Positions 2,842 to 57,985 of a stretch of 64,000 nucleotides of DNA are shown in pieces. The stretch is from Macrostomum lignano (Eukaryota). The stretch spans positions 518,855 to 582,854 of the forward strand of contig NIVC01000112.1 in the NCBI GenBank assembly GCA_002269645.1, in the 5' to 3' direction. The translations under genes were made by a program, and so were the position numbers. How positions within the stretch are numbered: the stretch's first letter is position 1; the number at the start of each line of letters is the position of its first letter. The notes under the pieces are model-generated. The model ran no database searches, was not told the origin of the DNA, and saw only the letters and a list, made by a program, of their open reading frames with translations.

Positions 2842-5054
2842 AATGTTACAGTTGTCTCTGTTAATGCCTTCGTTGCTGCCAATCACTGCCTTATTAATGT
2901 CAGTAGCAGCAGCCGCTGTCACAGAATATACTGTATATTCTATGGCATCGGCTGCTGCTACTCGCAGTCTCAGTCGTCTATGGCAGAACCTTTCCGAGCC
3001 GCATACGAGTAAGTATAAGTGACTACTATCTTTCTTCATCACAAAAGTAGCTAAATATGCTAATACTTTTTGCGGCAGATTTTTCTGCGAGAGGGCTGAT
3101 CGGCCATTCTGTCTATATTCTGTGCCCACGACTGTGAAACAACCCCCAGAGGACCGTGCATCACTGCTGTGGTTACTTTATGCGTGAGCGCCGGTGGCAG
3201 GTGCTGGGTTGGGTTGTTTTGATGTCTCTCACTCTCGCTGAATGTACTTTGCAAGCGCGGGGTGGGGTTTGGGTGAGTCAGCTGATCGATAATAAAATAT
3301 CGATAAAGTTTCAGTATAAGCTGGCTTTTCGGCCTGCAACGTTGTTTTTTGGCTTTCGTGTCGCAATCTCGTAAAGTTCAGACTTCTGACTACTTGACTT
3401 TATTTCACTCCGCTTACACGGAGCGAATCCACGGATAACTCACTGATGCAGACTACTTTGATGATACTTTGATCTTGTTTGTTTTTTGCTGGAAGTGAAA
3501 TGTAAATGATTTGATTCCACTCCATCAATGCCTCCCATTGTTTACCTAAATAAGAAATCGCCTCACGGAAGTGGTCGGAGGGGTTTAGTACTTTGAGTTT
3601 GAGCTCAGTGGTATCGTATCATTCGGCGATGAAGCATTGGAGAGTGTTCGGAGCCCTATTTTGCATCTATCTCTTTGCAGCGAGTAGATGTTACGTAATA
3701 AAACTGCCTTTGAGTTCGATACAGGTTCCCAGACGAAACGATGAGATAACCAAACGGAAAACATAGCTCGGATTCACAGAGTTCTTAATATTTGAAATCT
3801 GGGGAGCAGTCTAATCTGACATTTACAATAAATACATAGATAATGATGCAAGGATCTTTAAAACATTTAAAATTGTTTCGATTTATTGAGAAATATCCCT
3901 TTTTAGACCTTTTTGGGTCTCAGCATGGTCGGCGAAAAACTACCATGGGATTACTGTAGAACTGCTCGGAGATTTGTGGCCATCTGCTCAGGGATTGTGA
4001 GAAACAGTGCTGGTAAACCATAGCTGGTGAGCCATTGCTAAACTTCTGATAAACCGTTTCTAAACCGTTGGTGAACCGTAGCCAAATTGTGGGTGAGCCA
4101 TTGCTAAACTGCTGGTGAACCATCACTAAATTTTTGGTGAACCATTGAAGGTAATTTTGAACTGCCGAGTGTGCATAAAAAGTGTTTCGAAATGTCATTC
4201 GAATACATTGGGTTGTTCAAACTGCTACACCACTGAATGTAATACGAATCTGATGATGATACAGTCTTTTGTAGTCAAGATATTTAGTCTGTGAAGGTGT
4301 GACAGCATGAAGGAATCTCTGACTTTTCAAAGCTGCATAAGTTTAGGCTGCAAACTCCTGAGGGTACTGCTCATGCTAAATATGCCAATAATGCCAGTGC
4401 TTTGTCGCAAATGCATCTCTGACATCAATAGCCCCAGCAACAGCGCTGCGGTGTGCAGGACGCCTGGCAGAACAGCCCGTGCCGATACCAGCATGCAAAA
4501 CTTTGGGTTCGCTGAATTGACGATAAACAAATTCCCTTGGAAGATAGACACAAATCAGCTTTAAAGTCCCGGGATCTCTGTCAACCTGACAGAAAATTTA
4601 TGGGCCAAAATATGCTGGGACCGAAAAAGCTTCCATGCGACGCAAGTCTGCAAGTGTGTGAGCGAACTCACAAGACTCGTAGGTAGAGTTCGGTAGTTTT
4701 CCAGACAATAACAGCTTCAACTCTCAAGCTCAACTGCTCAAGACTTGCTTATGCTGTTCTTGAGGCCACCTATTGTGAGTCTGACACTGAAGAGCCGCTT
4801 TTAATTACTGCTGCCTCAAGGCTAGGTAGCATTGAGTTGAGAAGGGGCCGTGAGAGAATTAATATCAGATATGTGGTTGCTGAAATTAAAATGGCAGCTA
4901 CTGCATGCATCTTTCGTTCTTTCTTTGAATGCAATTTGGACCATGAGGCAAAAGCATTCAAATTTCAACCCCCTATCGAGTCTTGAGAGCACGTTTTTTG
5001 GGGCTTCTGTTTTGCAGGTAAGCAAAAACGTGCCCCCGCCCCAGTTTGCGGGTC

Positions 5055-5060
5055 TATAAA
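5055..5060 (+). promoter_or_regulatory. TATA box of the 5148-5447 peptide gene
   Basis: CTATAAAT starting 93 bp upstream of the ATG; the paralog has the same motif at a similar spacing. Confidence 0.6.
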
Positions 5061-5147
5061 TTCGACCACCTCGAGCTCAAAACGGCCCCCAAGACCCAAG
5101 ACGGGATCAACTTTGCAAAGCGAATCTCTCTGAATTCAGCAGCAGCC

Positions 5148-5447
5148 ATGAAGTGGCAGTTCGCTCTCGGTCTCCTCCTGTGCGTGGCGCTGGCGGTCTA
5201 CGCCAGCCCGGCTGAGCACAAAGAAGACGACGAAGACTTTGAAAAGGTGGCCTCCGCCCTGGCCGACATGGCCGAGCCCGATCTGGCCGAATCCGACGAG
5301 GACGCGGATCCGGAAGAGAAGTTTAGGATTCGGTTCGGCAGGCGTCGCTACTTCCGCAGGCGCTACTTCCGCAGGCGCAACTTCCGCAGGCGCTACTTCC
5401 GCATCCGCAGGCGCTTCTTCCGCAGGCGCTACCACTTCTATGGCTAA
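5148..5447 (+). CDS. Secreted cationic peptide precursor (99 aa): signal peptide, acidic pro-region and Arg/Phe/Tyr-rich tail; putative antimicrobial peptide
   Basis: MKWQFALGLLLCVALAVYA-SPAEHKEDDEDFEK...ESDEDADPEE-KFRIRFGRRRYFRRRYFRRRNFRRRYFRIRRRFFRRRYHFYG*. The true ATG is at 5148 (the ORF-track GTG start at 5046 is upstream UTR). GC-rich coding island in AT-rich flanks, with TATA upstream and AATAAA at 5691. Confidence 0.85.
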   Translation: MKWQFALGLLLCVALAVYASPAEHKEDDEDFEKVASALADMAEPDLAESDEDADPEEKFRIRFGRRRYFRRRYFRRRNFRRRYFRIRRRFFRRRYHFYG

Positions 5448-6916
5448 ACGAAGCGGACCGTCTTCTGAATTATCGCCTTGGACAATATGGCTAATCTTTC
5501 TTTACTGATAATGTACACTTAATCAACAAAAAAATTTACTATATAATATCAGCTTAAGTGATTGTTGAACATCGTGAACTTTGAGAATCTGCCAGGCAGA
5601 AAATACACTTGGAATTTCATCGTTCGCAGTTTGCAAGCTAGCTCGTAATTATTAAGCATTGTTTTTTTAACTTTTTTAACTTTTAGTTAAAATAAATATT
5701 TAGCAGCAGGGTAACAGACTTCAGCATCTTTCTCACTTTTCTGTTTCCGATCGTGCTTAAGTTGCGTCACTCAAAACTGAGTCAGAAATCAATACTGAGC
5801 TGGAATTTACTGCGCACTTTCAAAGGTGGCGACTTTTTAATGTTGTTGAGTATATATGCTTCCTCTATTGCAGACTCGGGTCGCCTTTGAAAAATATTGG
5901 TAAATATTTATCAGATCTATAAAATAGTGTTGACGCATTGTTTAAATCTATTTATTAATTTAGGAAATTATTTAGTATATTGTGACTAGCGCACTAAGCC
6001 CACCATTTTCCAAATTTGCCAAGTAAGTCTGAAGTAATTGAACCCTTTAGCAACTGCCCCCATCTGCAACTGCGCCACCCTCTGTGTTCTAAAATAACAC
6101 AAACAAAATCAGAGCAGTGGCAAATGGGCAGAGCAGAGCAAGATGGGGATTGTGAAAAAAGGCTTGTTTCGTCCGCAAACACATCGCATTTCAGGCCAGC
6201 AGCTTTATAACCCCCTCTATTTCATCGATCGTCTATCAGACTGGTAAACGATAAAACTCAATCAACACCACAAATTGCGAGTCATAAAACGCCTTAGCTA
6301 TTGTGAATGTACATTCTACACTGTACATTGGCCAAGGTGAGACCTAAATGATTGAACTGAACAATTAAATTCAAACGGAGCGTTAAGCGTGAAAGCGTTA
6401 AAAACATCTTTTTCGAATATTTGACCCCACTAGTCATAATAGGAATTTTTCATCAAAAAAGTTATGCATGATCGTTGAAGAATTCGATATTTAAAGAGAA
6501 AGCCAAAAATCAACATGTAGGTTGTTACGACGCGTTTTGCACACGTTAGGTGCATCGTCAGGCATATGGTTTGAAACGAGAGAACTTCATTAACAGCTTT
6601 CTCTCGTTTCAAACAATCAAGCTCGTAGCTCCACCTCGTCGAATCTATAAATCCGAAATCTGGGAGCTTTCGCTTACCTACAAAACAGAGCCCCAAGAAG
6701 TCAAGCCAAATTTGGGTGAGCTGGTTAAGAGAATACTCAGCCCCTCAGGTAGTCTGCATGCTCAATGCGACCTAGCCTTGAGACAGCGGCAATGAAGAGT
6801 CGGTCTTTCCAGTGCCAGGCTCACAATGGGGTGGGGGTTCAGACTCAAATAAACAGTTCTTGAGCCTAACAGTAGAGCTTTTATTCTTGAGAGACTGCAG
6901 AACTCTTTCACATATC

Positions 6917-8206
6917 GCCTGCAGCGCTAATGACTGCCTGAGGCGCTAATGACTGCCAGCAGCGCTAAACTGAGTGACTGCCGCGCTAAAATGAGTGGCT
7001 GCGGCGCTAAAATGACTGCCTGCAGCGCTAATGACTGCCAGCAGCGCTAAAATGAGTGCCTGCGGCGCTAAAATGAGTGCCTGCCGCGCTAAAATGAGTG
7101 GCTGCGGCGCTAAACTGAGTGCCTGCAGCGCTAAAATGAGTGCCTGCGGCGCTAAAATGAGTGCCTGCGGCGCTAAAATGAGTGCCTGCCGCGCTAAAAT
7201 GAGTGGCTGCGGCGCTAAACTGAGTGCCTGCAGCGCTAAAATGAGTGCCTGCGGCGCTAAAATGAGTGCCTGCGGCGCTAAAATGAGTGCCTGCCGCGCT
7301 AAAATGAGTGGCTGCGGCGCTAAACTGAGTGCCTGCAGCGCTAAAATGAGTGCCTGCGGCGCTAAAATGAGTGCCTGCGGCGCTAAAATGAGTGCCTGCC
7401 GCGCTAAAATGAGTGGCTGCGGCGCTAAACTGAGTGCCTGCAGCGCTAAAATGACTGCCAGCAGCGCTAAAATGAGTGCCTGCGGCGCTAAAATGAGTGC
7501 CTGCCGCGCTAAAATGAGTGGCTGCGGCGCTAAACTGAGTGCCTGCAGCGCTAAAATGAGTGCCTGCGGCGCTAAAATGAGTGCCTGCGGCGCTAATGAC
7601 TGCCAGCAGCGCTAAAATGAGTGCCTGCGGCGCTAATGACTGCCAGCAGCGCTAAAATGAGTGCCTGCGGCGCTAAAATGAGTGCCTGCGGCGCTAAAAT
7701 GAGTGCCTGCCGCGCTAAAATGAGTGGCTGCGGCGCTAAACTGAGTGCCTGCAGCGCTAAAATGAGTGCCTGCGGCGCTAAAATGAGTGCCTGCGGCGCT
7801 AATGACTGCCAGCAGCGCTAAAATGAGTGCCTGCGGCGCTAATGACTGCCAGCAGCGCTAAAATGAGTGCCTGCGGCGCAAAAATGAGTGGCTGCGGTGC
7901 TAAACTGAGTGCCTGCAGCGCTAAAATGAGTGGCTGCGGCGCTAAAATGAGTGCCTGCCGCGCTAAAATGAGTGGCTGCGGTGCTAAACTGAGTGCCTGC
8001 AGCGCTAAAATGAGTGCCTGCGGTGCTAAAATGAATGCTTGTGGCGCTAAAATGAGTGTCTGTGGCGCTAAAATGAGTGCCTGCGGCGCTAAAATGAATG
8101 CTTGTGGCGCTAAAATGAATGCTTGTGGCGCTAAAATGAGTGCCTGCGGCGCTAAAATGAATGCTTGTGGCGCTAAAATGAGTGGCTGCGGCGCTAAAAT
8201 GAGTGC
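6917..8206. repeat. 21-bp minisatellite (GGCGCTAAAATGAGTGCCTGC)n
   Basis: Directly visible tandem array; the overlapping MSACGAK/LAPQALI ORFs are repeat artefacts. Confidence 0.95.
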
Positions 8207-9024
8207 TGACAACACCGATTCTGAAAATAATCTGTACATGATAATGTGCATTTCCCATATAAAAAATCCAACTCGATGGGGGGCGTGCGCCCTCCCCCCC
8301 CCCTAAATCCGCCACTGAACCTGGCCCCCCACTTTTTGAAACGTTCCTACGCCTACGATATTAATTTTATTCAAGCAACATTGCAGAGCTTGATGTGATG
8401 CTAACAGCAAACCAATAGCTGACCAAATTAAATGCCACTGTGTCAGCCTTGCTACCATAGACAAAAGCTCCATTACTTTACCAACCGTGTCTTACATTAA
8501 ATTAAATTTATCGCACGTAGGCCCTAATGGGCTGCAAAAGCTATAGTAAAAGTGTTTATCATATTTCAGAGGGACTCTGAACGATTGAATACAAACATAC
8601 TAAAAATCAATTCGAACTCTTGATCAAAGAGAACAGTCGAGTCTTCGCACAATCTCTGATTTAGCATGCCAGATCATCCAATCTAGGACACGGAATTCGC
8701 CTTCTCGGCGTGCAAGCCATCTTCAAATTCAATAAATAAAAACAAGATCTGCTGAGAGTAGCCCGTACGAGTTACCTGTACTTAAAATAAGAGTAGGAAT
8801 AGCAAAGTAAGTGTACGCTCGTGTATTACCATTCTTTTTGTATAAATCAGCTGCATTGACACGACAAGCTCATGCGATGGTGAAACATGCTCTTTTCGGT
8901 ATTGATAATTTTGCAAATGCAATACTTGTATCGATAATTCTACAAAGTACTACATACTGTGGAGAGCATATAGTATTACTCAGTACAATCAGTTCCGTTG
9001 CGGACAGTCCAGTGGCGGCCACAA

Positions 9025-9270
9025 TCAGCCATAAATCACGCGCCTCCGGTATCCGTGCCTCTTCAGATAGCGCTTGTAGGCGCGCTTCAGCTTGCGCTTG
9101 AAGCGCCTGTAGCGGCCTTTAGCCTGCAGGTGCTCGACCTCATCGCTCTCCATGGCCTCCTGCAGCTGGGCGAGCTCGGCCAGGTCCGAGTCCTCGGCCT
9201 CGGCCGACGGCGACGCCATGACGGCCACGGCGACGCAGGCGAGCAGAAGAGCGGCCAGCTGCCACTTCAT
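9025..9270 (-). CDS. Secreted cationic peptide precursor (81 aa), paralog of 5148-5447; putative antimicrobial peptide
   Basis: MKWQLAALLLACVAVAVMA-SPSAEAEDSDLAELAQLQEAMESDEVEHLQA-KGRYRRFKRKLKRAYKRYLKRHGYRRRVIYG*. It shares the MKWQ..L signal, SP start of the pro-region, acidic spacer and terminal YG. Confidence 0.85.
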   Translation of the reverse strand: MKWQLAALLLACVAVAVMASPSAEAEDSDLAELAQLQEAMESDEVEHLQAKGRYRRFKRKLKRAYKRYLKRHGYRRRVIYG

Positions 9271-9365
9271 GCTGATTGATGCTGCTGATGCTGCGGAAAT
9301 TCAACGAGAACAGCGGCGATTCAGACCTCCCAGTCAGCTGATAATGGAAGTGAAGCTGGGCGCCA

Positions 9366-9371
9366 TTTATA
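9366..9371 (-). promoter_or_regulatory. TATA box of the 9025-9270 peptide gene
   Basis: CTATAAAT on the minus strand, about 100 bp upstream of the ATG. Confidence 0.6.
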
Positions 9372-9931
9372 GCCTGTTCTGAGCACGTTTTCTGAGCAGA
9401 CCTACGACACGGGAGGCGCCTGCATGCGAAATGCCCCCGAGTGTGATTAAGAAGCGGATTGAACCGGCTTTTTATTCCTCGCTGGGCAAGTGAGTGTTAA
9501 ACTCAGCGAGACGAAAGTGCCAAGGGCACTGACAAACAACGATACAATTAATACGTATGGGGTACGATTGGGGTGCGATTAACACTGCGTACTTTGGTCT
9601 AGTACTCGTAGTTAATGCAAATTGAGCAGTTTCTTTTCCTTTCTATTGTAGTATTGAGGCTCAAAAGTATTTAATTCTGGGGTGCACAGTGTTCTTTGCG
9701 TCAGATAGGGCCTCACGTGTTTGCGTGATGATGAAATTTTATGACAGCAGGAGACAATAATTATATATTGCTGGAAGCAAGGTACGGTATGTTTCAAAAC
9801 TTCTGTAAATAAATATTGACAAGTATGGAAGGATTTCATAAAGATGAGATACAGAAACGAATGAGAGGAGATAGCAAGGAAAGGAGTGAGATAGATTCGA
9901 AATAGGGTGAGATAGATTCAGAATGGAGTGA

Positions 9932-15215: not shown

Positions 15216-15861
15216 AGATGGAAGATTAGGAAATGCAGGTCGAGAAGGGAGGGAGACAGGGAGAAGGAGAGAGAAGGGAGAGATTTGGTGGGATAGACAA
15301 CGATTCGCAGGCAGAGGTAGAACAGGCAGGGCCACCTGTCCCTATATCCATAGCAACCATCCGGTACGCGAGAATCTCAAGCCCCCATTCGCTCTCCCAA
15401 AAAAGGAGTTGGCGATCAGGAGGGCGCACTAGAGGTCGACTATGTGAGATAATGAACTGCGAGGCACCATGAGGTTGCTACTTTGAATGAATTTAGCACT
15501 AACTGACGGAGTCTAGGAGACAGAGAGACACAGGAGATTAATGAGTGAAGATGTGTGTGTGATGGAAGATGTGTGTGATGGAAGATGTGTGTGTGTGTGT
15601 GTGTGTGTGCTTGGCTCCTTCCGCAGTGAAAGATCTTCCCAAAAGGAAGCCGCGCTCGGTGAACAAAGCAGAACTGAAACAGGAGATGGTCTTGCGTGGG
15701 TGTGCTAAGCAGTGACGATACAGTCTGTGTGCGCTGCTTGCAGATACGGAAGGCTGACAGGAAGCCAAATTTATTAACTGCGTTAGGAATTACGCGTCTT
15801 TTGAGCCATAAATAATTATCTATTGATCTACGGATTTCATTTTGTTACTGTTAGTGACTGC

Positions 15862-18675
15862 TCAATCAGTCACTCTCAATCAGTCGCTCTCAATCAGTCA
15901 CTCTCAATCAGTCACTCTCAATCAGTCACTCTCAATCAGTCACTCTCAATCAGTCACTCTCAATCAGTCACTCTCAATCAGTCGCTCTCAATCAGTTACT
16001 CTCAATCAGTCACTCTCACTCAATCAGTCACTCTCAACCAGTCACTCTCAATCAGTCACTCTCAATCAGTCGCTCTCAATCAGTCACTCTCAATCAGTCA
16101 CTCTCAATCAGTCACTCTCAATCAGTCACTCTCAATCAGTCGCTCTCAATCAGTTACTCTCAATCAGTCACTCTCACTCAATCAGTCACTCTCAACCAGT
16201 CACTCTCAATCAGTCACTCTCAATCAGTCACTCTCAATCAGTCACTCTCAATCAGTCACTCTCAACCAGTCACTCTCAATCAGTCACTCTCAATCAGTCA
16301 CTCTCAATCAGTCACTCTCAATCAGTTACTCTCAATCAGTCACTCTCAATCAGTCACTCTCAATCAGTCACTCTTAATCAGTCACTCTCAATCAATCACT
16401 CTCAACCAGTCACTCTCAATCAGTCACTCTCAACCAGTCACTCTCAACCAGTCACTCTCAATCAGTTACTCTCAATCAATCACTCTCAATCAGTCACTCT
16501 CAATCAGTCACTCTCAATCAGTCACTCTCAATCAGTCACTCTCAATCAGTCACTCTCAATCAGTTACTCTCAATCAGTCACTCTCAATCAGTCACTCTCA
16601 ATCAGTCACTCTTAATCAGTCACTCTCAATCAGTCACTCTCAATCAGTCACTCTCAATCAGTCACTCTCAATCAGTCACTCTCAATCAGTCACTCTCAAT
16701 CAGTCACTCTCAATCAGTCACTCTCAATCAGTCACTCTCAATCAGTCACTCTCAATCAGTCACTCTCAATCAGTCACTCTCAATCAGTCACTCTCAATCA
16801 GTCACTCTCAATCAGTCACTCTCAATCAGTCACTCTCAATCAGTCACTCTCAATCAGTCACTCTCAATCAGTCACTCTCAATCAGTCACTCTCAATCAGT
16901 CACTCTCAATCAGTCACTCTCAATCAGTCACTCTCAATCAGTCACTCTCAATCAGTCACTCTCAATCAGTCACTCTCAATCAGTCACTCTCAATCAGTCA
17001 CTCTCAATCAGTCATTCTCAATCAGTCACTCTCAATCAGTCACTCTCAATCAGTCACTCTCAATCAGTCACTCTCAATCAGTCACTCTCAATCAGTCACT
17101 CTCAACCAGTTACTCTCAATCAGTCACTCTCAATCAGTCACTCTCAATCAGTCACTCTCAATCAGTCACTCTCAATCAGTCACTCTCAATCAGTCACTCT
17201 CAATCAGTCACTCTCAATCAGTCACTCTCAATCAGTCACTCTCAATCAGTCACTCTCAATCAGTCACTCTCAATCAGTCACTCTCAATCAGTCACTCTCA
17301 ATCAGTCACTCTCAATCAGTCACTCTCAATCAGTCACTCTCAATCAGTCACTCTCAATCAGTCACTCTCAATCAGTCACTCTCAATCAGTCACTCTCAAC
17401 CAGTTACTCTCAATCAGTCACTCTCAATCAGTCACTCTCAATCAGTCACTCTCAATCAGTCACTCTCAATCAGTCACTCTCAATCAGTCACTCTCAATCA
17501 GTCACTCTCAATCAGTCACTCTCAATCAGTCACTCTCAACCAGTTACTCTCAATCAGTCACTCTCAATCAGTCACTCTCAATCAGTCACTCTCAATCAGT
17601 CACTCTCAATCAGTCACTCTCAATCAGTCACTCTCAATCAGTCACTCTCAATCAGTCACTCTCAATCAGTCTCTCTCAATCAGTCACTCTCAATCAGTCA
17701 CTCTCAATCAGTCACTCTCAATCAGTCACTCTCAATCAGTCACTCTCAATCAGTCACTCTCAATCAGTCACTCTCAATCAGTCACTCTCAATCAGTCACT
17801 CTCAATCAGTCACTCTCAATCAGTCACTCTCAATCAGTCACTCTCAATCAGTCACTCTCAATCAGTCACTCTCAATCAGTCACTCTCAATCAGTCACTCT
17901 CAATCAGTCACTCTCAATCAGTCACTCTCAATCAGTCACTCTCAATCAGTCACTCTCAATCAGTCACTCTCAATCAGTCACTCTCAATCAGTCACTCTCA
18001 ATCAGTCACTCTCAATCAGTCATTCTCAATCAGTCACTCTCAATCAGTCACTCTCAATCAGTCACTCTCAATCAGTCACTCTCAATCAGTCACTCTCAAT
18101 CAGTCACTCTCAATCAGTCACTCTCAATCAGTCACTCTCAATCAGTCACTCTCAATCAATCACTCTCAATCAGTCACTCTCAATCAGTCACTCTCAATCA
18201 ATCACTCTCAATCAGTCACTCTCAATCAGTCACTCTCAATCAATCACTCTCAATCAGTCACTCTCAATCAGTCACTCTCAATCAGTCACTCTCAACCAGT
18301 TACTCTCAATCAGTCACTCTCAATCAGTCACTCTCAATCAGTCACTCTCAATTAATCACTCTCAATCAGTCACTCTCAATCAATCACTCTCAATCAGTCA
18401 CTCTCAATCAGTCACTCTCAATCAGTCTCTCTCAATCAGTCACTCTCAATCAATCACTCTCAATCAGTCACTCTCAATCAGTCACTCTCAATCAGTCACT
18501 CTCAATCAGTCACTCTCAATCAGTCTCTCTCAATCAGTCACTCTCAATCAGTCACTCTCAATCAGTCACTCTCAATCAGTCACTCTCAATCAGTCACTCT
18601 CAATCAGTCACTCTCAATCAGTCACTCTCAATCAGTCACTCTCAATCAGTCACTCTAAAGCAGTCACTCTCAATT
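15862..18675. repeat. 14-bp minisatellite (CAATCAGTCACTCT)n, ~2.8 kb
   Basis: Highly homogeneous visible array. Confidence 0.98.
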
Positions 18676-42364: not shown

Positions 42365-45300
42365 GGCAGACAGACAGGCAGACAGACAGACAGACAGGCA
42401 GACAGGCAGGCAGATAGGTACAAATACAGACAGACAGGCACTAAGACAGACAGATAGGTAGATAGAACAGTTGGTAGGCATTCGGAAAAGGCAGCTCTGA
42501 GAGATCAAGCAAGATGATCCCGAGCGAGCCGCTTGCATCAGAATGCTGGGGTGAGTCATACAAGGATCCGCTCCCACCCCAGCCCATGCGAGCAGACTCT
42601 ACGAGCAACGCTTAGAAAACGAATGCGGGAAGAGAGGAAGAGACGGGGCGAGCTCTGCCGGCTTCTGTGGAGAATTTTTCGTGGAGAAGAGGATGAGGGG
42701 AGAATTACCGCGGGAAAGACGAGAAGACAGAGGGTGTCGTCGGATCCCAGAACTCAATTATAGGCATGGAGCTCCCTTTCAACTCGCCTCTTCCTTTCTC
42801 CCGCCACCCAATTAGGGGAGAGTTCGTTGCCGGGTCAAAACGGGGCTGTGGATGACGACAGCTTGAGGCATTCCTGGGATTCGTACGCGTATTTACACAC
42901 CCTAGCTCATCATACTATTTATTTCCCATGTTGCCGTGCCGGTAACCGGGCCATGCATGAGTCATGTGCGGACTGCACTCGACCGTCCGTGGCTGCACCC
43001 TCTTCTCTGAATACGCCTTTCTCTCTCTCTCTCTTCCTCTTTGAGCATCTCTAAGTGTCCTCAGCTCGAGCCCGATATCTACTCTGGGGGGGGGGAATTT
43101 ATGGACCAGGGGGTTCTGAGTCCCGTTAGAGAAAAGAATCCTCAGTAAGGGTCTGCAGATAGCTAGCGGCAATAGTCAAGCATGATCGACTTTATTCCAA
43201 AAACATTGGGCGCATTTTACAAACCGCATGGTTAATCAAGGACAAAGGGCTATTGTTGACCAACGGTATACCGTCGGTTGCGCCGAAGCAATAATTTGAT
43301 GAAACTAATTGCGCTTCTTGGGAAACACACGTGGCGTTGCGCGGGGTCTGACAGACGCTTTTTCAGCTTCGGGCCTCAGTCGCAAGCCCCCGCCAAAAAA
43401 ATCCCGCCCAATTGCAGGCTGTGCCCGTATCGTTTGGATATCGGCGTTCAACGCTGGCTCGAAGCGCCAATCGACGATGTCGGCAAGTTGCCAACGGAGC
43501 AGCCGCTTCAGCCACAGCCGCAGCCGCAGGCGCAGCCCAGCTCGCCAGCTCCGCTCCAGCTGATGTCGAAGCCTCAAACTCCGACACCGCCGCACCTGCA
43601 AAATTTGGCGGCTACCGAGTTCGGCTCGCTCTCGATTCGCCGACGCGTTCAGCACCGGCCGCAGCGCAGCGCCGTCTCCCAGGTGGCCTCGGTGACCGCC
43701 GCCGGTGGCGGCGGCGGCGTCGGCGGCGGAAGCTGCCGATCCCAGCTGCTGGAGGTTCGCGGCTTCGCCACCCCATCGCCGACAACTGTTGGCGCCGTGG
43801 CCACCCTGGGCCGGGCCCGTTCTGCCGTGGTGCTCGAGGAGCTGCGCTACCGACCTCAGCAGCAGTACCTGTACCAGTACCAGCTGCAGCACCAGCAGCA
43901 GTACCAGCTGCAGCAACAGCAGAGAGTGCTCAGCCCGCAGCCTCAGCAATACCGCCGAATGCAGCAGCAGCAGCAGCCGATGCCGCAGGGCCAGTCCACC
44001 ATCAGCGATCCGGCCGACTGCTGCCAGCAACTCGGCCGTCAGCGCGCCGTTTCCCAGCTGGTGTTCCGCGAGGAGTCGTTCGCTCGCACCCTGACGGCCT
44101 GCCGCCGTCACTACCAGCGCAGACTGGCGCGTCGCCTCACCGAGGTCGAGATGCGGACGCTGTTCTTCAACCAGGACGCCTTGCTGGCGGCCAGCCGCAC
44201 CGCCCTGCAGCAGATTCGGAGCGCCGGCTCCGCCGAGGTGGACAACATCGGCCAGATCTACCGGGCCAGGCTGTTCCAGCTGTGCGACGACTACCGAGAG
44301 TACGCGGAGAACCTCGCCGAGGCCGGCCTGCCGCTGCTCGAGCGGCTCCGGGCCACCATTCCGAGCCTCGTTGCCGACGCGCGACTGCCAGCCGACCAGT
44401 TCGAGGCCGTGGGTGACGAACTGGAGGACGAAGATGACGATGATGACGACGACGACGATCTGCAGCCGCCGCCACCGCCGCTCCGCACCTGCCTGCTCCG
44501 CCCGGTGTCGCACCTCTCCGGTCTGGCGCGCGACTTCAGCGCCATTCTGGCCTGCACTCCGACCGCGCACTATGACCACCTGTTCGCCGAGGACGTTCAG
44601 CAGAATCTTGAGCACTGCGTCTCGTTGATGCCGCAGATGCCACCGGAGTTGCCGCCGAATCTGGCGATGTCGCTGACGGCCTCCGGCGGGAACTCCGCCT
44701 TGGGAGCATCGAACCTACCGCCGCAATCGCCGGCCGCTCAGCAGCGACACCCGACAACGTCGCCGACTGCGCACAGTCTCGTAGCCTCATCGTCCGGAGT
44801 TTCCAGCGAGCAGTCGGGCGTCGCCGCTGCAACCGATCACCAGCATCACGCGCACCTTCTGCATCACCAGCAGCACCAGCTGCATCAGCACTCGCAGTCG
44901 GACGTCCTCGGCGGCAGCAGCGGCAATGACTTGACGGCCCTGCAGCAGCGCCTGATCTTCCCCGGTCACGTGCGGCCGTTTCACCTGCCCGCGCCGGGTC
45001 GCCGCCTCGCCCTGTCCGGCGAGCTGCTCTGGCACCCGACTCCGCAGCAGCAGCAGCAGAAGATCATGCTGCAGTCCCGCCGGGTCCACGCCGTTCTGCT
45101 CACCGACCTCCTGCTGCTCACCCAGCGCCGGCCCGGCGACGCCTGCCTGCTGGCCCTGGCGGAGCCGTGCCGCCTCTCCGGCTGCTGCCAGGCCGCCTTT
45201 GACTGTCCCGGGCGCCTCTTCCAGCTGGCCTTCTCGCCGCTGACTATGGCGGGCTCTTCGACTACGTCGACCGGTGCGTCGGGTGGCGGCGTTGGCGGCC

Positions 45301-45395
45301 TCGTGCTGCTGCTGGAGGCGCCCAGCTGCGAGGCCAAACAGCTGTGGCGGCTGTGCATCGCCCAGCTGCTCCTGGGAGGCATCGCCGCCTGCTGA
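39309..45395 (+). CDS. PDZ + DH (RhoGEF-like) + PH domain protein, 3 exons, ~816 aa
   Basis: Exons 39309-39590, 41688-41878 and 43418-45395 join in phase at GT-AG sites. Exons 2-3 encode a PDZ domain ([51 protein letters not shown]...[16 protein letters not shown]). Exon 3 also has a DH-like region ([15 protein letters not shown]...[10 protein letters not shown]...YREYAENL...CLLRPVSHL) and a PH domain (RRLALSGEL...[12 protein letters not shown]...[18 protein letters not shown]). Confidence 0.85.
39612..39860. repeat. (CTAT)n microsatellite in intron 1 of the PDZ-DH-PH gene
   Basis: Direct reading. Confidence 0.97.
41175..41575. repeat. ~50-bp intronic minisatellite (GCAGTGAGTGTACATTGATAGAACAGTGTGGAGTG...)
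   Basis: Visible tandem array. Confidence 0.9.
41968..42460. repeat. (GACA)n intronic microsatellite
   Basis: Direct reading. Confidence 0.95.
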
Positions 45396-56073: not shown

Positions 56074-57985
56074 TCAGTCCCTATCAAAGCAGTTCATGAC
56101 CTCCCTGAACTGCATCAGGCCGGGCTCCGCGCTGATGCCTCCAGTGGCCGAGGACAGCAGAGCAGCAGTGTCTCCAGTCAGCAGTTTGCGGAACAGCTCG
56201 TCGGTCAGGGTGACCTTCACGTCCGGCTTGGCCTTCAGCCGCGTGTTGACCAGATCCAGGATTCCCTCGCGGATGTGGAACCTGTTGCATTTGCGGTCCA
56301 GCTTTTGAAAAATATCAATATTTTTTGCATCCTCATGCCACAATCTTGAACTGTATTTCAAGATCTCATCGTTTTGCAATTACGGATGCACTAAAAAACA
56401 ACTATCTAATCATGCATAAGAATTAAACGTACCTTATAACTTTTTTAACGTCGCTGAAGTTAAACTCAACCAGTCTGTCCATCTGGCTGCACTCTTCAAA
56501 GTTAAATCGATAGCGGAACATCTGGAACAGCGTCTCCAGGCTCACAGTGAAGATCGTCCTCGAGCGCACGTCCTGCCTGATCTTGGTGTCAATCTTTCCA
56601 AGCTCTTCGTACGCGCAAGTGACGTAGTAGTTATACCCATTGGCGCTAATCTGACCAGCCGCAAGCTCGAAAATCGCCTTCACTTTCAGTTCGCGAGCAC
56701 TGGTTGATGAAGGATTCGCGCGTTGGGCCGCTGATGCTAGTTGAAGCGCCCATTGAAAATCGCTCTTAGCCAAAGCGCTCGAGGCCGCTTCCAGAATTTT
56801 GTCCTCTCCGCCTGCAAGCTCAACCAAACGAACCGCTTGCTGTTCCGTGCTTAAGGGACTCAGCTCTTCCACGTAACCACTGAACCACCCCAGGTAGCCT
56901 GCGAACAGACCCTTCACTGACCAGGCAACGGTTCCGTAGAACTCCTGCAGGTAGTCGTGCTCTGAAAGACGTTTTGTTAAGCTTACCTTGTGAGCGATGT
57001 CATCTGGATGGAGACCACGGTTCATCCAGCGCACTGTTTGGTCATGCACCGTTTGTACAGCGTCGCGATAGGTTAGCAACAGTTCCGCGATCTCCTTCTT
57101 TCCCACAATGGGTCTGGTATGACTGGGAACCAAGTACTGGGCATTGAGCGCGTACATTCGATCCAACGACTGCGTCCACAGTTCCAGGCTGCGAAACGGC
57201 GTGCCTCTGATGGCGTACAGATTTGGAAAGGCTTTGTACACATCGTCAGCACAGAACAGGGCCTCCTTCTCGGGCCAATAGACAGCGATCTGGTCATCAG
57301 TTTCACCGGGGATGTGCACCAGCTTCAGCTTCAATCCGGCGATGGTTACATCCGCCTCGGCACCATCTAGGAATCGGTTCGGAGGAACGAAACCCGAGCG
57401 AAACTGCTTCTGACCGAGGTTGAGGCTGAAACCGATGCCAGAGTTTGGCGTGTTCTCTCGCTCAATCAGTGCACCGAACTGTCGCATGGCTCGCTTGTAG
57501 ATGATCGGTCCTGTGACGTAGTTTGTCAGTCTGAAGATGTCTATCAAACTGCGGTGGGACCAGATGTGTACAGAGGAATTCCCGTCAACGTCTTTGAGAA
57601 ATGCTTCAGCTCCGTTCACGTGGTCCTGATGGTTGTGCGTGTACACGATCGCTTTTATGGGAGACTTCGTCACCTGGCGAAAGGCCTCGTAAATCTTCTC
57701 CGCCGCGTCCATGGACTCCACGGTGTCGATGATGATGGCACCTTCGGGCGCTTCGATGAGGATGGAGTTGGCCAGGGCGTAGCCAATGGCTACGTAGATT
57801 CCCTCCGTAACCTTGAGTACCTCCGGCTTGTTGAACTCATTAGCATGAGTCTTGAGCTTCCTGGCGTTGTTGCTGTTAGCTCGGCCGTACTCCACAATGC
57901 GCTCGACTGAACGACGCTCCTGCCACTTGGTGCCCACTATGTAGGCTATGAGAACGACGCACAAAACTCGAAGTATGCGCTCCAT
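56074..57985 (-). CDS. Alkyl/aryl sulfatase, SdsA1/BDS1 family (metallo-beta-lactamase fold, dimerisation domain, SCP2-like C-terminus), 2 exons, ~586 aa
   Basis: Exons 57985-56433 and 56281-56074 (AG|GTACGT...CAACAG|G) give 1761 bp in frame. Motifs YTHNHQDHVNG (HxHxDH), HIPGETDDQ, NLYAIRGT, VPSHTRP, FYGTVAWSVK, DFQWALQL. N-terminal hydrophobic signal/anchor. Confidence 0.92.

Follow-up and report, generated by a model that had tools for sequence, protein, structure and literature searches.

The A/B locus

The window analysed here, a 64-kb stretch of DNA from the flatworm Macrostomum lignano (64,000 nucleotides (nt); assembly GCA_002269645.1, contig NIVC01000112.1, forward-strand positions 518,855 to 582,854), contains two convergent genes, A and B, encoding small precursor proteins composed of a hydrophobic leader, an acidic propiece, and a basic tail. 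A and B are real genes and belong to a large, clustered, previously undescribed multigene family that is so far found only in Macrostomum and whose products are predicted to be secreted, amidated polycationic peptides. The two genes are laid out as follows, in window coordinates.

5148-5447, + strand: coding sequence of gene A (ATG at 5148, stop at 5445-5447, 99 amino acids), from the open reading frame (ORF), its translation, and the family alignment
5148-5204, + strand: putative signal peptide of A, 19 amino acids
5205-5321, + strand: acidic propiece of A, net charge -14
5322-5444, + strand: Arg/aromatic tail of A, 41 amino acids, net charge +21, ending in Tyr-Gly
5346-5432, + strand: 15-nt tandem repeat in the tail of A, encoding (R)RRYF (Tandem Repeats Finder: 5346-5403, period 15, 3.9 copies, 95% matches; the repeat continues to 5432)
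5691-5696, + strand: AATAAA, likely poly(A) signal of A, 244 nt past the stop (pattern scan)
9270-9025, - strand: coding sequence of gene B (ATG at 9270, stop at 9027-9025, 81 amino acids), from the ORF and its translation
9270-9214, - strand: putative signal peptide of B, 19 amino acids
9213-9118, - strand: acidic propiece of B, net charge -9
9117-9028, - strand: Arg/Lys/Tyr tail of B, 30 amino acids, net charge +15, ending in Tyr-Gly

Signal peptide, propiece, and tail read MKWQFALGLLLCVALAVYA, SPAEHKEDDEDFEKVASALADMAEPDLAESDEDADPEEK, and FRIRFGRRRYFRRRYFRRRNFRRRYFRIRRRFFRRRYHFYG in A and MKWQLAALLLACVAVAVMA, SPSAEAEDSDLAELAQLQEAMESDEVEHLQAK, and GRYRRFKRKLKRAYKRYLKRHGYRRRVIYG in B. The two leaders, each followed by Ser-Pro, are nearly identical and hydrophobic, with MK, a 15-residue hydrophobic core, and V-Y-A (A) or V-M-A (B) ahead of the Ser, obeying the -3/-1 rule, and the AlphaFold2 (AF2) model of A draws the leader as a helix. 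The tails end in RRRYHFYG (A) and YRRRVIYG (B), in both cases followed by the stop codon. A first-pass annotation made from the DNA letters had outlined two uninterrupted tail-to-tail ORFs with such a leader, a D/E-rich spacer, and a Cys-free basic tail closed by Tyr-Gly-stop, and all of these elements are present; recounting also reproduced its residue numbers, with 21 Arg and 1 Lys in the last 42 residues of A, 10 Arg and 6 Lys in the last 31 of B, and no Cys in either tail. Its term "single-exon" stands for the coding sequence, the part on which it was established and which is uninterrupted in each gene, and reaches no further than that. The proposed paralogy of A and B was borne out by tblastn of B against the window, which retrieved A at E = 2.8e-12 and no comparable third copy in the 64 kb. 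No canonical poly(A) signal was found by pattern scan within 600 nt downstream of B.

The locus is duplicated on contig NIVC01000866.1, at 99.7% identity; both ORFs are intact in both copies, and the B copy there differs by one R-to-H replacement in the tail. The exact protein of A and this variant of B are called genes on NIVC01000866.1, and the exact protein of B is a called gene on NIVC01000112.1, the best-matching database proteins for A and B being M. lignano hypothetical proteins. Because the GenBank gene models of GCA_002269645.1 were built from RNA-seq transcript assemblies and TransDecoder ORFs (PMC5730564), we infer that A and B are transcribed.

A multigene family in Macrostomum

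A profile hidden Markov model was built from A, B, and their first two relatives and run against a set of 1.84 billion representative proteins. Of its nine matches, one is a Logan contig, one a dubious metagenome protein, and the others are "hypothetical proteins" of M. lignano. A second profile, of 12 sequences, picked out 23 of 5.8 billion clusters; these contain about 50 sequences, which again come from M. lignano with the exception of one Logan contig, and neither profile search detected a relative in Schistosoma or Schmidtea. The paralog count that the first-pass annotation had suggested as a check thus gave about 50 sequences, in agreement with its proposal of a lineage-specific family with paralogs: none was detected outside Macrostomum, and the loci are clustered. 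For example, locus L008 carries five family genes within 20 kb in mixed orientations and L009 carries two. On NIVC01000866.1, A is preceded at a distance of about 11 kb, just beyond the window, by a third paralog (P0001/P0016). As other family clusters mix orientations, a special meaning of the tail-to-tail arrangement of A and B was rejected. B has no close paralog beyond its duplicate-locus copy, a word-seeded search with B alone giving no match.

When A, B, and eight paralogs were compared with Pfam, NCBIfam-style, and PDB sequences, no meaningful match emerged; a borderline "Lock_Gag1-like" match over 17 residues of the P0017 propiece, which is duplicated, is spurious. The published literature, searched by family gene identifiers, gave no record of any member, and six family identifiers had no relevant match in M. 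lignano supplement tables, a negative whose weight is limited by the differing identifier systems; the lone match there was an unrelated gene sharing a transcript cluster. The earlier remark that neither sequence is a named peptide is therefore upheld, no named family, Pfam domain, or paper having been found, and a match to an already described family, which would have told against novelty, was looked for in Pfam, PDB, and the profile searches and did not appear.

All members follow a common plan: a leader of the form MKWQ(L/F/I)ALGLLLC, which is the best-conserved part of the family alignment, an acidic propiece of 30-40 residues, one to three Lys, and a variable tail. The tails are cysteine-poor and Arg-rich, range from 7 to 47 residues and in charge from 0 to +21, and begin with Phe, Trp, Ile, or Leu, with B (Gly) as the exception among the 24 members compared. 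Their single conserved position is the terminal Gly, present in 19 of 24 distinct members, with Gly-Lys in one more, and Gly makes up 1.9% of the tails elsewhere. Judged by this pattern, the terminal Gly is probably converted to a C-terminal amide; flatworms are known to amidate peptides, as confirmed by mass spectrometry (MS) in planarians (PMC2953531), and M. lignano has GYIRFamidergic neurons and a PC2 homologue (PMC4490696). The charges of propiece and tail are balanced across the family (Spearman rho = -0.86), from -14/+21 in A and -9/+15 in B to about -5/+3 in the short members, although the members are related by descent, so that the P value of this correlation is not a true probability.

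The tails fall into four classes, namely alternating Arg/hydrophobic peptides of 7-11 residues (FVRVRVRL-G, IFRVRVRI-G, FVRVHVRF-G, WLRVRARVRI-G), helix-like 24-30-mers (P0011, P0004, P0019, and B), a Pro-Arg repeat peptide (P0006), and long Arg/Tyr/Phe/His repeats (A, P0016, and P0015). These classes differ in physical character. Over residues 1-21 of the B tail, the helical hydrophobic moment is 0.65 (z = +2.7 relative to shuffled sequences), a value similar to those obtained in the same way for magainin and LL-37, and P0011, P0004, and P0019 are, as B, classical amphipathic cationic designs. The short (VR)n tails are perfect strand amphiphiles, with z about +2.5. The A tail, on the other hand, shows no helical or strand amphipathicity and only a 5-residue RRRYF period, AF2 still drawing a helix, and the tails of P0016 and P0015 are likewise non-amphipathic repeats of Arg with Tyr, Phe, and His. 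In the AF2 model of B, the acidic propiece helix adjoins the cationic tail helix with a predicted local distance difference test score of about 90, an arrangement that would fit charge masking.

The conservation of the family extends to a promoter module and, at some loci, to a longer upstream element:

5026-5061, + strand: core promoter of A, AAACGTG (5026-5032) followed by CTATAAAT (5054-5061), 94 nt before the ATG
9390-9365, - strand: core promoter of B, AAACGTG (9390-9384) followed by CTATAAAT (9372-9365), starting 102 nt before the ATG
4815-4836 and 6761-6782, no strand assigned: near-palindromic 22-mer CTCAAGGCTAGGTAGCATTGAG, one copy about 320 nt upstream of A and the second downstream of A; none is expected by chance

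The octamer CTATAAAT, which the first-pass annotation had placed about 100 bp upstream of each gene, was located there and occurs four times on both strands of the 64-kb window. The module was scored at window positions 5026-5061 and 9365-9390 and in the upstream regions of L003, L004, L007, L008, and L009: 11 of 12 family promoters combine a (C/T)ATAAAT box, 87-124 nt ahead of the ATG, with an (A/C)ACGTG element a further 20-31 nt upstream, which in P0002 takes the variant form ACACGAG; for the twelfth, the sequence available upstream is too short. This ACGTG-TATA module is essentially the sole similarity between the upstream regions of A and B, the rest being unalignable, which suggests constraint on the module and co-regulation of the genes, perhaps in one cell type. 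Both copies of CTCAAGGCTAGGTAGCATTGAG form part of a 47-nt inverted repeat (4790-4836 and 6761-6807), and one copy lies upstream of P0002 at three loci (L004 9739-9760, L005 9739-9760, and L006 7355-7376), and a regulatory element is possible; no copy was found at B, P0016, or the short-tail genes. A mobile cassette containing A with inverted-repeat bounds was rejected, as the supposed boundary repeat is the near-palindromic 22-mer, of which only A has a second copy, P0002 has one, and the others none. A scan for bacterial promoters and terminators is irrelevant to this eukaryotic DNA.

The tails are the hypervariable part. Nucleotide identity between A and P0002 is about 77% from -160 through the propiece (codon 58) and again over the first ~50 nt after the stop, and no alignment of the tail was obtained by blastn. 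Between L008_10076 and L008_6726, synonymous and nonsynonymous divergence (dS and dN) are both 0.083 over signal and propiece and reach 0.82 and 0.52, respectively, in the tail; between A and P0002, dS/dN is 0.36/0.24 over signal and propiece and 0.94/0.87 in the tail. Tail divergence in close paralog pairs is roughly 5-10 times that of the leader. The nucleotide-level map, the region-wise dN/dS, and the alignment thus agree with the earlier picture of a conserved leader joined to a divergent mature region, and add the propiece, the edges of the untranslated regions (UTRs), and the promoter to the conserved part. Where that picture had called the family diversifying, in the sense of positive selection, the data do not follow: omega ranges from 0.2 to 1.2, dS is raised alongside dN, the tails are short and repetitive with some comparisons saturated, and because dN/dS is not clearly above 1, positive selection is not demonstrated. 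A visible source of change is the 15-nt repeat inside the A tail, which indicates that the tail grew by repeat slippage; the P0006 tail contains 3.5 copies of a 15-nt repeat, and the P0001/P0016 copies differ by a 27-nt indel in the tail. Judging from these repeats, part of the tail divergence is due to slippage of short codon repeats.

Several observations on individual members are of note. The GenBank model of P0001 (96 amino acids; L003 10001-10318, NIVC01000866.1) cuts 27 nt of Arg-rich repeat as an "intron", and the genomic ORF is uninterrupted, encodes 105 amino acids, and is identical to P0016 of another contig, so that the "intron" is probably no splicing event but a difference in repeat copy number between genome and transcript. 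A relic of a family gene, MKWQFALEV-stop, lies at L003 12108 (+), 2.1 kb downstream of the P0016 start, pointing to gene birth and death inside the cluster; P0015 and P0028 are further truncated members. P0027 (UniRef A0A1I8G6Q8, from an older M. lignano annotation; 73 amino acids) carries the name "SERPIN domain-containing protein", evidently an annotation error, as its sequence shows the leader and propiece of the family and no serpin domain. The Logan contig of P0006 was rejected as transcript evidence because it carries the promoter and is therefore genomic DNA. P0010, a 92-residue JGI metagenome protein, was rejected as a relative and regarded as a compositional look-alike; it is probably bacterial, with a Tat-like leader and an RRRY-rich tail, WRRRRYRRFYRRRYRWGRRYLRRRYRWGW, that is near the tail of A in composition, most likely through convergent low complexity.

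Elsewhere in the window, a 21-bp minisatellite of 62 copies (6917-8206, 1.3 kb) lies between A and B and is unrelated to the genes. In all, the window contains more than 30 distinct arrays of mini- and microsatellites (e.g. 15861-18674, with 200 copies of a 14-bp unit), which give rise to long spurious ORFs. An intronless ORF of 520 amino acids at 56423-57985 (-) encodes metallo-beta-lactamase and alkyl-sulfatase dimerisation domains (Pfam E = 1e-18 and 9e-35), its best NCBIfam matches being weak and bacterial in type. A 705-residue open frame at 43278-45395 (+), which contains low-complexity stretches rich in Gln and Pro, matched neither Pfam nor NCBIfam and may belong to a real gene.

Possible roles of the peptides

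By analogy with known precursors, we read the family as secreted, charge-masked, amidated polycationic peptides and tentatively regard host defence as their most likely role, a prediction rather than an observation. The precursor would enter the endoplasmic reticulum, the acidic propiece would mask the polycationic tail during transport, a protease would cleave at the Lys junction, and the terminal Gly would be converted to a C-terminal amide; the freed polycation would then be secreted and act on polyanionic targets, of which microbial envelopes are likeliest, with host defence at the epidermis, mucus, or gut. The members may do so in different ways. B (+15) could act on membranes as an amphipathic helix, A (+21, (RRRYF)n) could behave as a protamine-like or Arg-rich peptide through polyanion binding or cell entry, and short paralogs, such as FVRVRVRL-amide, could function as strand-type amphiphiles.

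A number of points weigh against a defensive role. The signal peptide was assigned from the sequence pattern, the Lys junction is a putative cleavage site, and AF2 helices for such sequences are weak evidence. The tail of A is non-amphipathic and extremely hydrophilic, an unusual property for membrane-active peptides. Di- and tribasic sites abound in both tails, and neuroendocrine convertases would there cut the tails down to di- to heptapeptides, complete cleavage yielding FRIRF-Gly, YHFY-Gly, and dipeptides from A and scraps only from B, so that survival of the intact tail is an assumption. With tail dN/dS not above 1, the divergence of the tails could reflect repeat turnover, codon misalignment in low-complexity sequence, or gene conversion of the 5' halves, instead of selection in favour of diversity. 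Moreover, no functional, peptidomic, or expression-site record of the family was found in the M. lignano literature and supplements.

That A and B are chance ORFs or decaying pseudogenes in repeat-rich DNA, without a functional product, is highly improbable: the window is packed with minisatellites, part of the A tail is a tandem repeat, B but not A is listed as a called gene on NIVC01000112.1, and truncated relics exist (MKWQFALEV in L003, P0015, and P0028), but neither ORF is broken in either of the two genomic copies (99.7% identical), RNA-seq underlies the gene models (PMC5730564), and A and B show homology to one another as well as to over 20 further intact ORFs with which they have signal peptide, terminal Gly, and promoter module in common. 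A role as other secreted effectors, which we consider somewhat unlikely, would make them components of seminal fluid or other reproductive products, toxins or deterrents aimed at prey or predators, or polycations that use Arg and Tyr/Phe to condense or adhere to polyanionic material such as mucus, rhabdite or adhesive secretions, and silica or diatom surfaces. Reproductive and venom proteins are also typically fast-evolving, lineage-restricted, clustered, small, and secreted, the glands of M. lignano are known to secrete numerous novel products, the non-amphipathic tails of A, P0016, and P0015 suit polyanion binding over membrane insertion, and no tie of the family to immunity was found. However, the amphipathic cationic designs of B, P0011, P0004, and P0019 fit this role poorly, as do the charge-masking propiece and the terminal amidation, both predicted here and usual for membrane-active peptides, and no member was found in the supplement tables searched, including those of a reproduction-related gene study, with the weight of this negative limited by the differing identifiers.

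As the main alternative, which keeps some probability for the short-tailed paralogs, the family may consist of neuropeptide or peptide-hormone precursors, made in neurons or endocrine-like cells, cleaved at basic sites by a PC2-type enzyme, amidated, and acting on receptors as expanded kin of the RF/RL/RI-amides (npp-1 FVRL/I-amide, YIRFamide). Signal peptide, acidic spacer, KK, short peptide, and Gly-stop are a standard neuropeptide layout too; the short paralogs would yield FVRVRVRL-, IFRVRVRI-, and FVRVHVRF-amide, with the FVR start and VR(L/I/F)-amide end of the MS-confirmed npp-1 peptides ASFVRLa, GFVRLa, and GFVRIa (PMC2953531), gene A holds K-FRIRF-G-RRR, a textbook -IRFamide site, and PC2 and amidated-peptide neurons exist in M. 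lignano (PMC4490696). We nonetheless judge this unlikely, since the conservation is reversed, with the peptide least and the leader and spacer most conserved, and the tails vary between 7 and 47 residues and in charge between 0 and +21. In npp-1 precursors, a peptide of 5-6 residues, whose conservation spans planarians and schistosomes, is present several times (PMC2953531), whereas here there is a single C-terminal tail, and the family profile picked up nothing from Schistosoma or Schmidtea. Cutting A and B at every dibasic site would give mostly dipeptides, and B is devoid of an internal Gly-basic site. The two roles need not exclude each other, as some Hydra neuropeptides and neuron-derived peptides are themselves antimicrobial (PMC10945409).

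A scenario combining both, which we put forward as speculative and quite unlikely, is that the family is an offshoot of ancient flatworm RF/RL/RI-amide precursors of the npp-1 FVRL/I-amide type, freed of receptor constraint and expanded in Macrostomum, in which codon-repeat slippage from FVRL to FVR(VR)nL to (RRRYF)n would have made secreted polycationic effectors and the shared ACGTG-TATA promoter would mark one secretory or neurosecretory cell type. If true, it would represent a neuropeptide-to-defence-peptide transition with the intermediates still in one genome.

Under host defence, the role we tentatively favour, the mechanism of diversification would be unusually visible, proceeding via short codon-repeat slippage, and the tails would be natural counterparts of minimal (VR)n and (RRRYF)n peptide designs. 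If the products are instead neuropeptides or reproductive peptides, they would still add up to a large set of signals or effectors that has gone unannotated in a model organism. To our knowledge, almost no antimicrobial or other secreted effector peptides have been characterised in free-living flatworms, and a literature search for one described in M. lignano found none. RNA interference, in situ hybridisation, and stable transgenesis are available in M. lignano, and the combination of a tractable worm with a compact, delimited family and a 120-bp promoter module makes these readings immediately testable.

Comparison with known precursor systems

The gene family is new, sizeable, and unannotated, and its architecture, here in a genetically tractable flatworm, is of an already known kind. 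In being very rich in Arg, free of Cys, and hardly amphipathic, the tails of A, P0016, and P0015 resemble salmon protamine and the linear Arg-rich host-defence peptides of the PR-39/bactenecin type, and the Pro-Arg-Val-Arg repeats of P0006 recall the Pro/Arg-rich peptides. Protamines, on the other hand, are nuclear and lack a signal peptide and propiece, both of which A and B possess (the propiece being acidic), so that a protamine-like nuclear protein does not describe them, and mammalian Pro/Arg-rich peptides derive from cathelin-domain precursors. We know of no named counterpart for the aromatic RRRYF periodicity of A.

With precursors of the npp-1 and YIRFamide type, the family shares a signal peptide, a spacer, a basic site, and a Gly-ending peptide, with no precursor homology detected by the profile searches. 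The npp-1 peptides are 5-6 residues long, multi-copy, and conserved across flatworm classes (PMC2953531), whereas each precursor here has one hypervariable tail, the least conserved part, of 41 residues ending in HFY-Gly in A and 30 residues ending in VIY-Gly in B. Repeated Gly-dibasic peptide units as in npp-1 were not found; only A has one such internal unit, K-FRIRF-G-RRR, the other basic sites having no preceding Gly.

The closest likenesses are to precursors of defence peptides. In the preprodermaseptins of frogs, the C-terminal Gly is often an amide donor, and a basic processing site precedes the peptide, as is predicted for the flatworm family. According to the passage of PMC3742671 citing Vanhoye et al. 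(2003), their signal peptide, acidic propiece, and 5' and 3' UTRs are conserved, whereas the peptide-coding segment is hypervariable, the same pattern as between A and P0002 and within the L008 cluster. The sequences are nevertheless unrelated and from another phylum, the flatworm junction being Lys or Lys-Lys rather than Lys-Arg, the coding sequence uninterrupted, and the tails Arg-rich rather than Lys-rich. The comparison with Hydra arminins made in the first-pass annotation holds for layout and genomics: the arminins and other Hydra antimicrobial peptide families combine a signal peptide and a negative N-terminal part with a strongly cationic C-terminal peptide and form many paralogs in tandem clusters, restricted to one genus with no homologues elsewhere (PMC10945409). 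The arminins have demonstrated antibacterial activity and are expressed in the endodermal epithelium, whereas the flatworm family is known here from its genes; the two profile searches found no sequence similarity between them, and the flatworm tails are richer in Arg, often built of short repeats, and mostly Gly-ending. As there is no sequence homology, the likeness to arminin and dermaseptin precursors is convergent, and, if the family is defensive, it would represent a third independent design of conserved leader and hypervariable cationic peptide, after those of Hydra and frogs.

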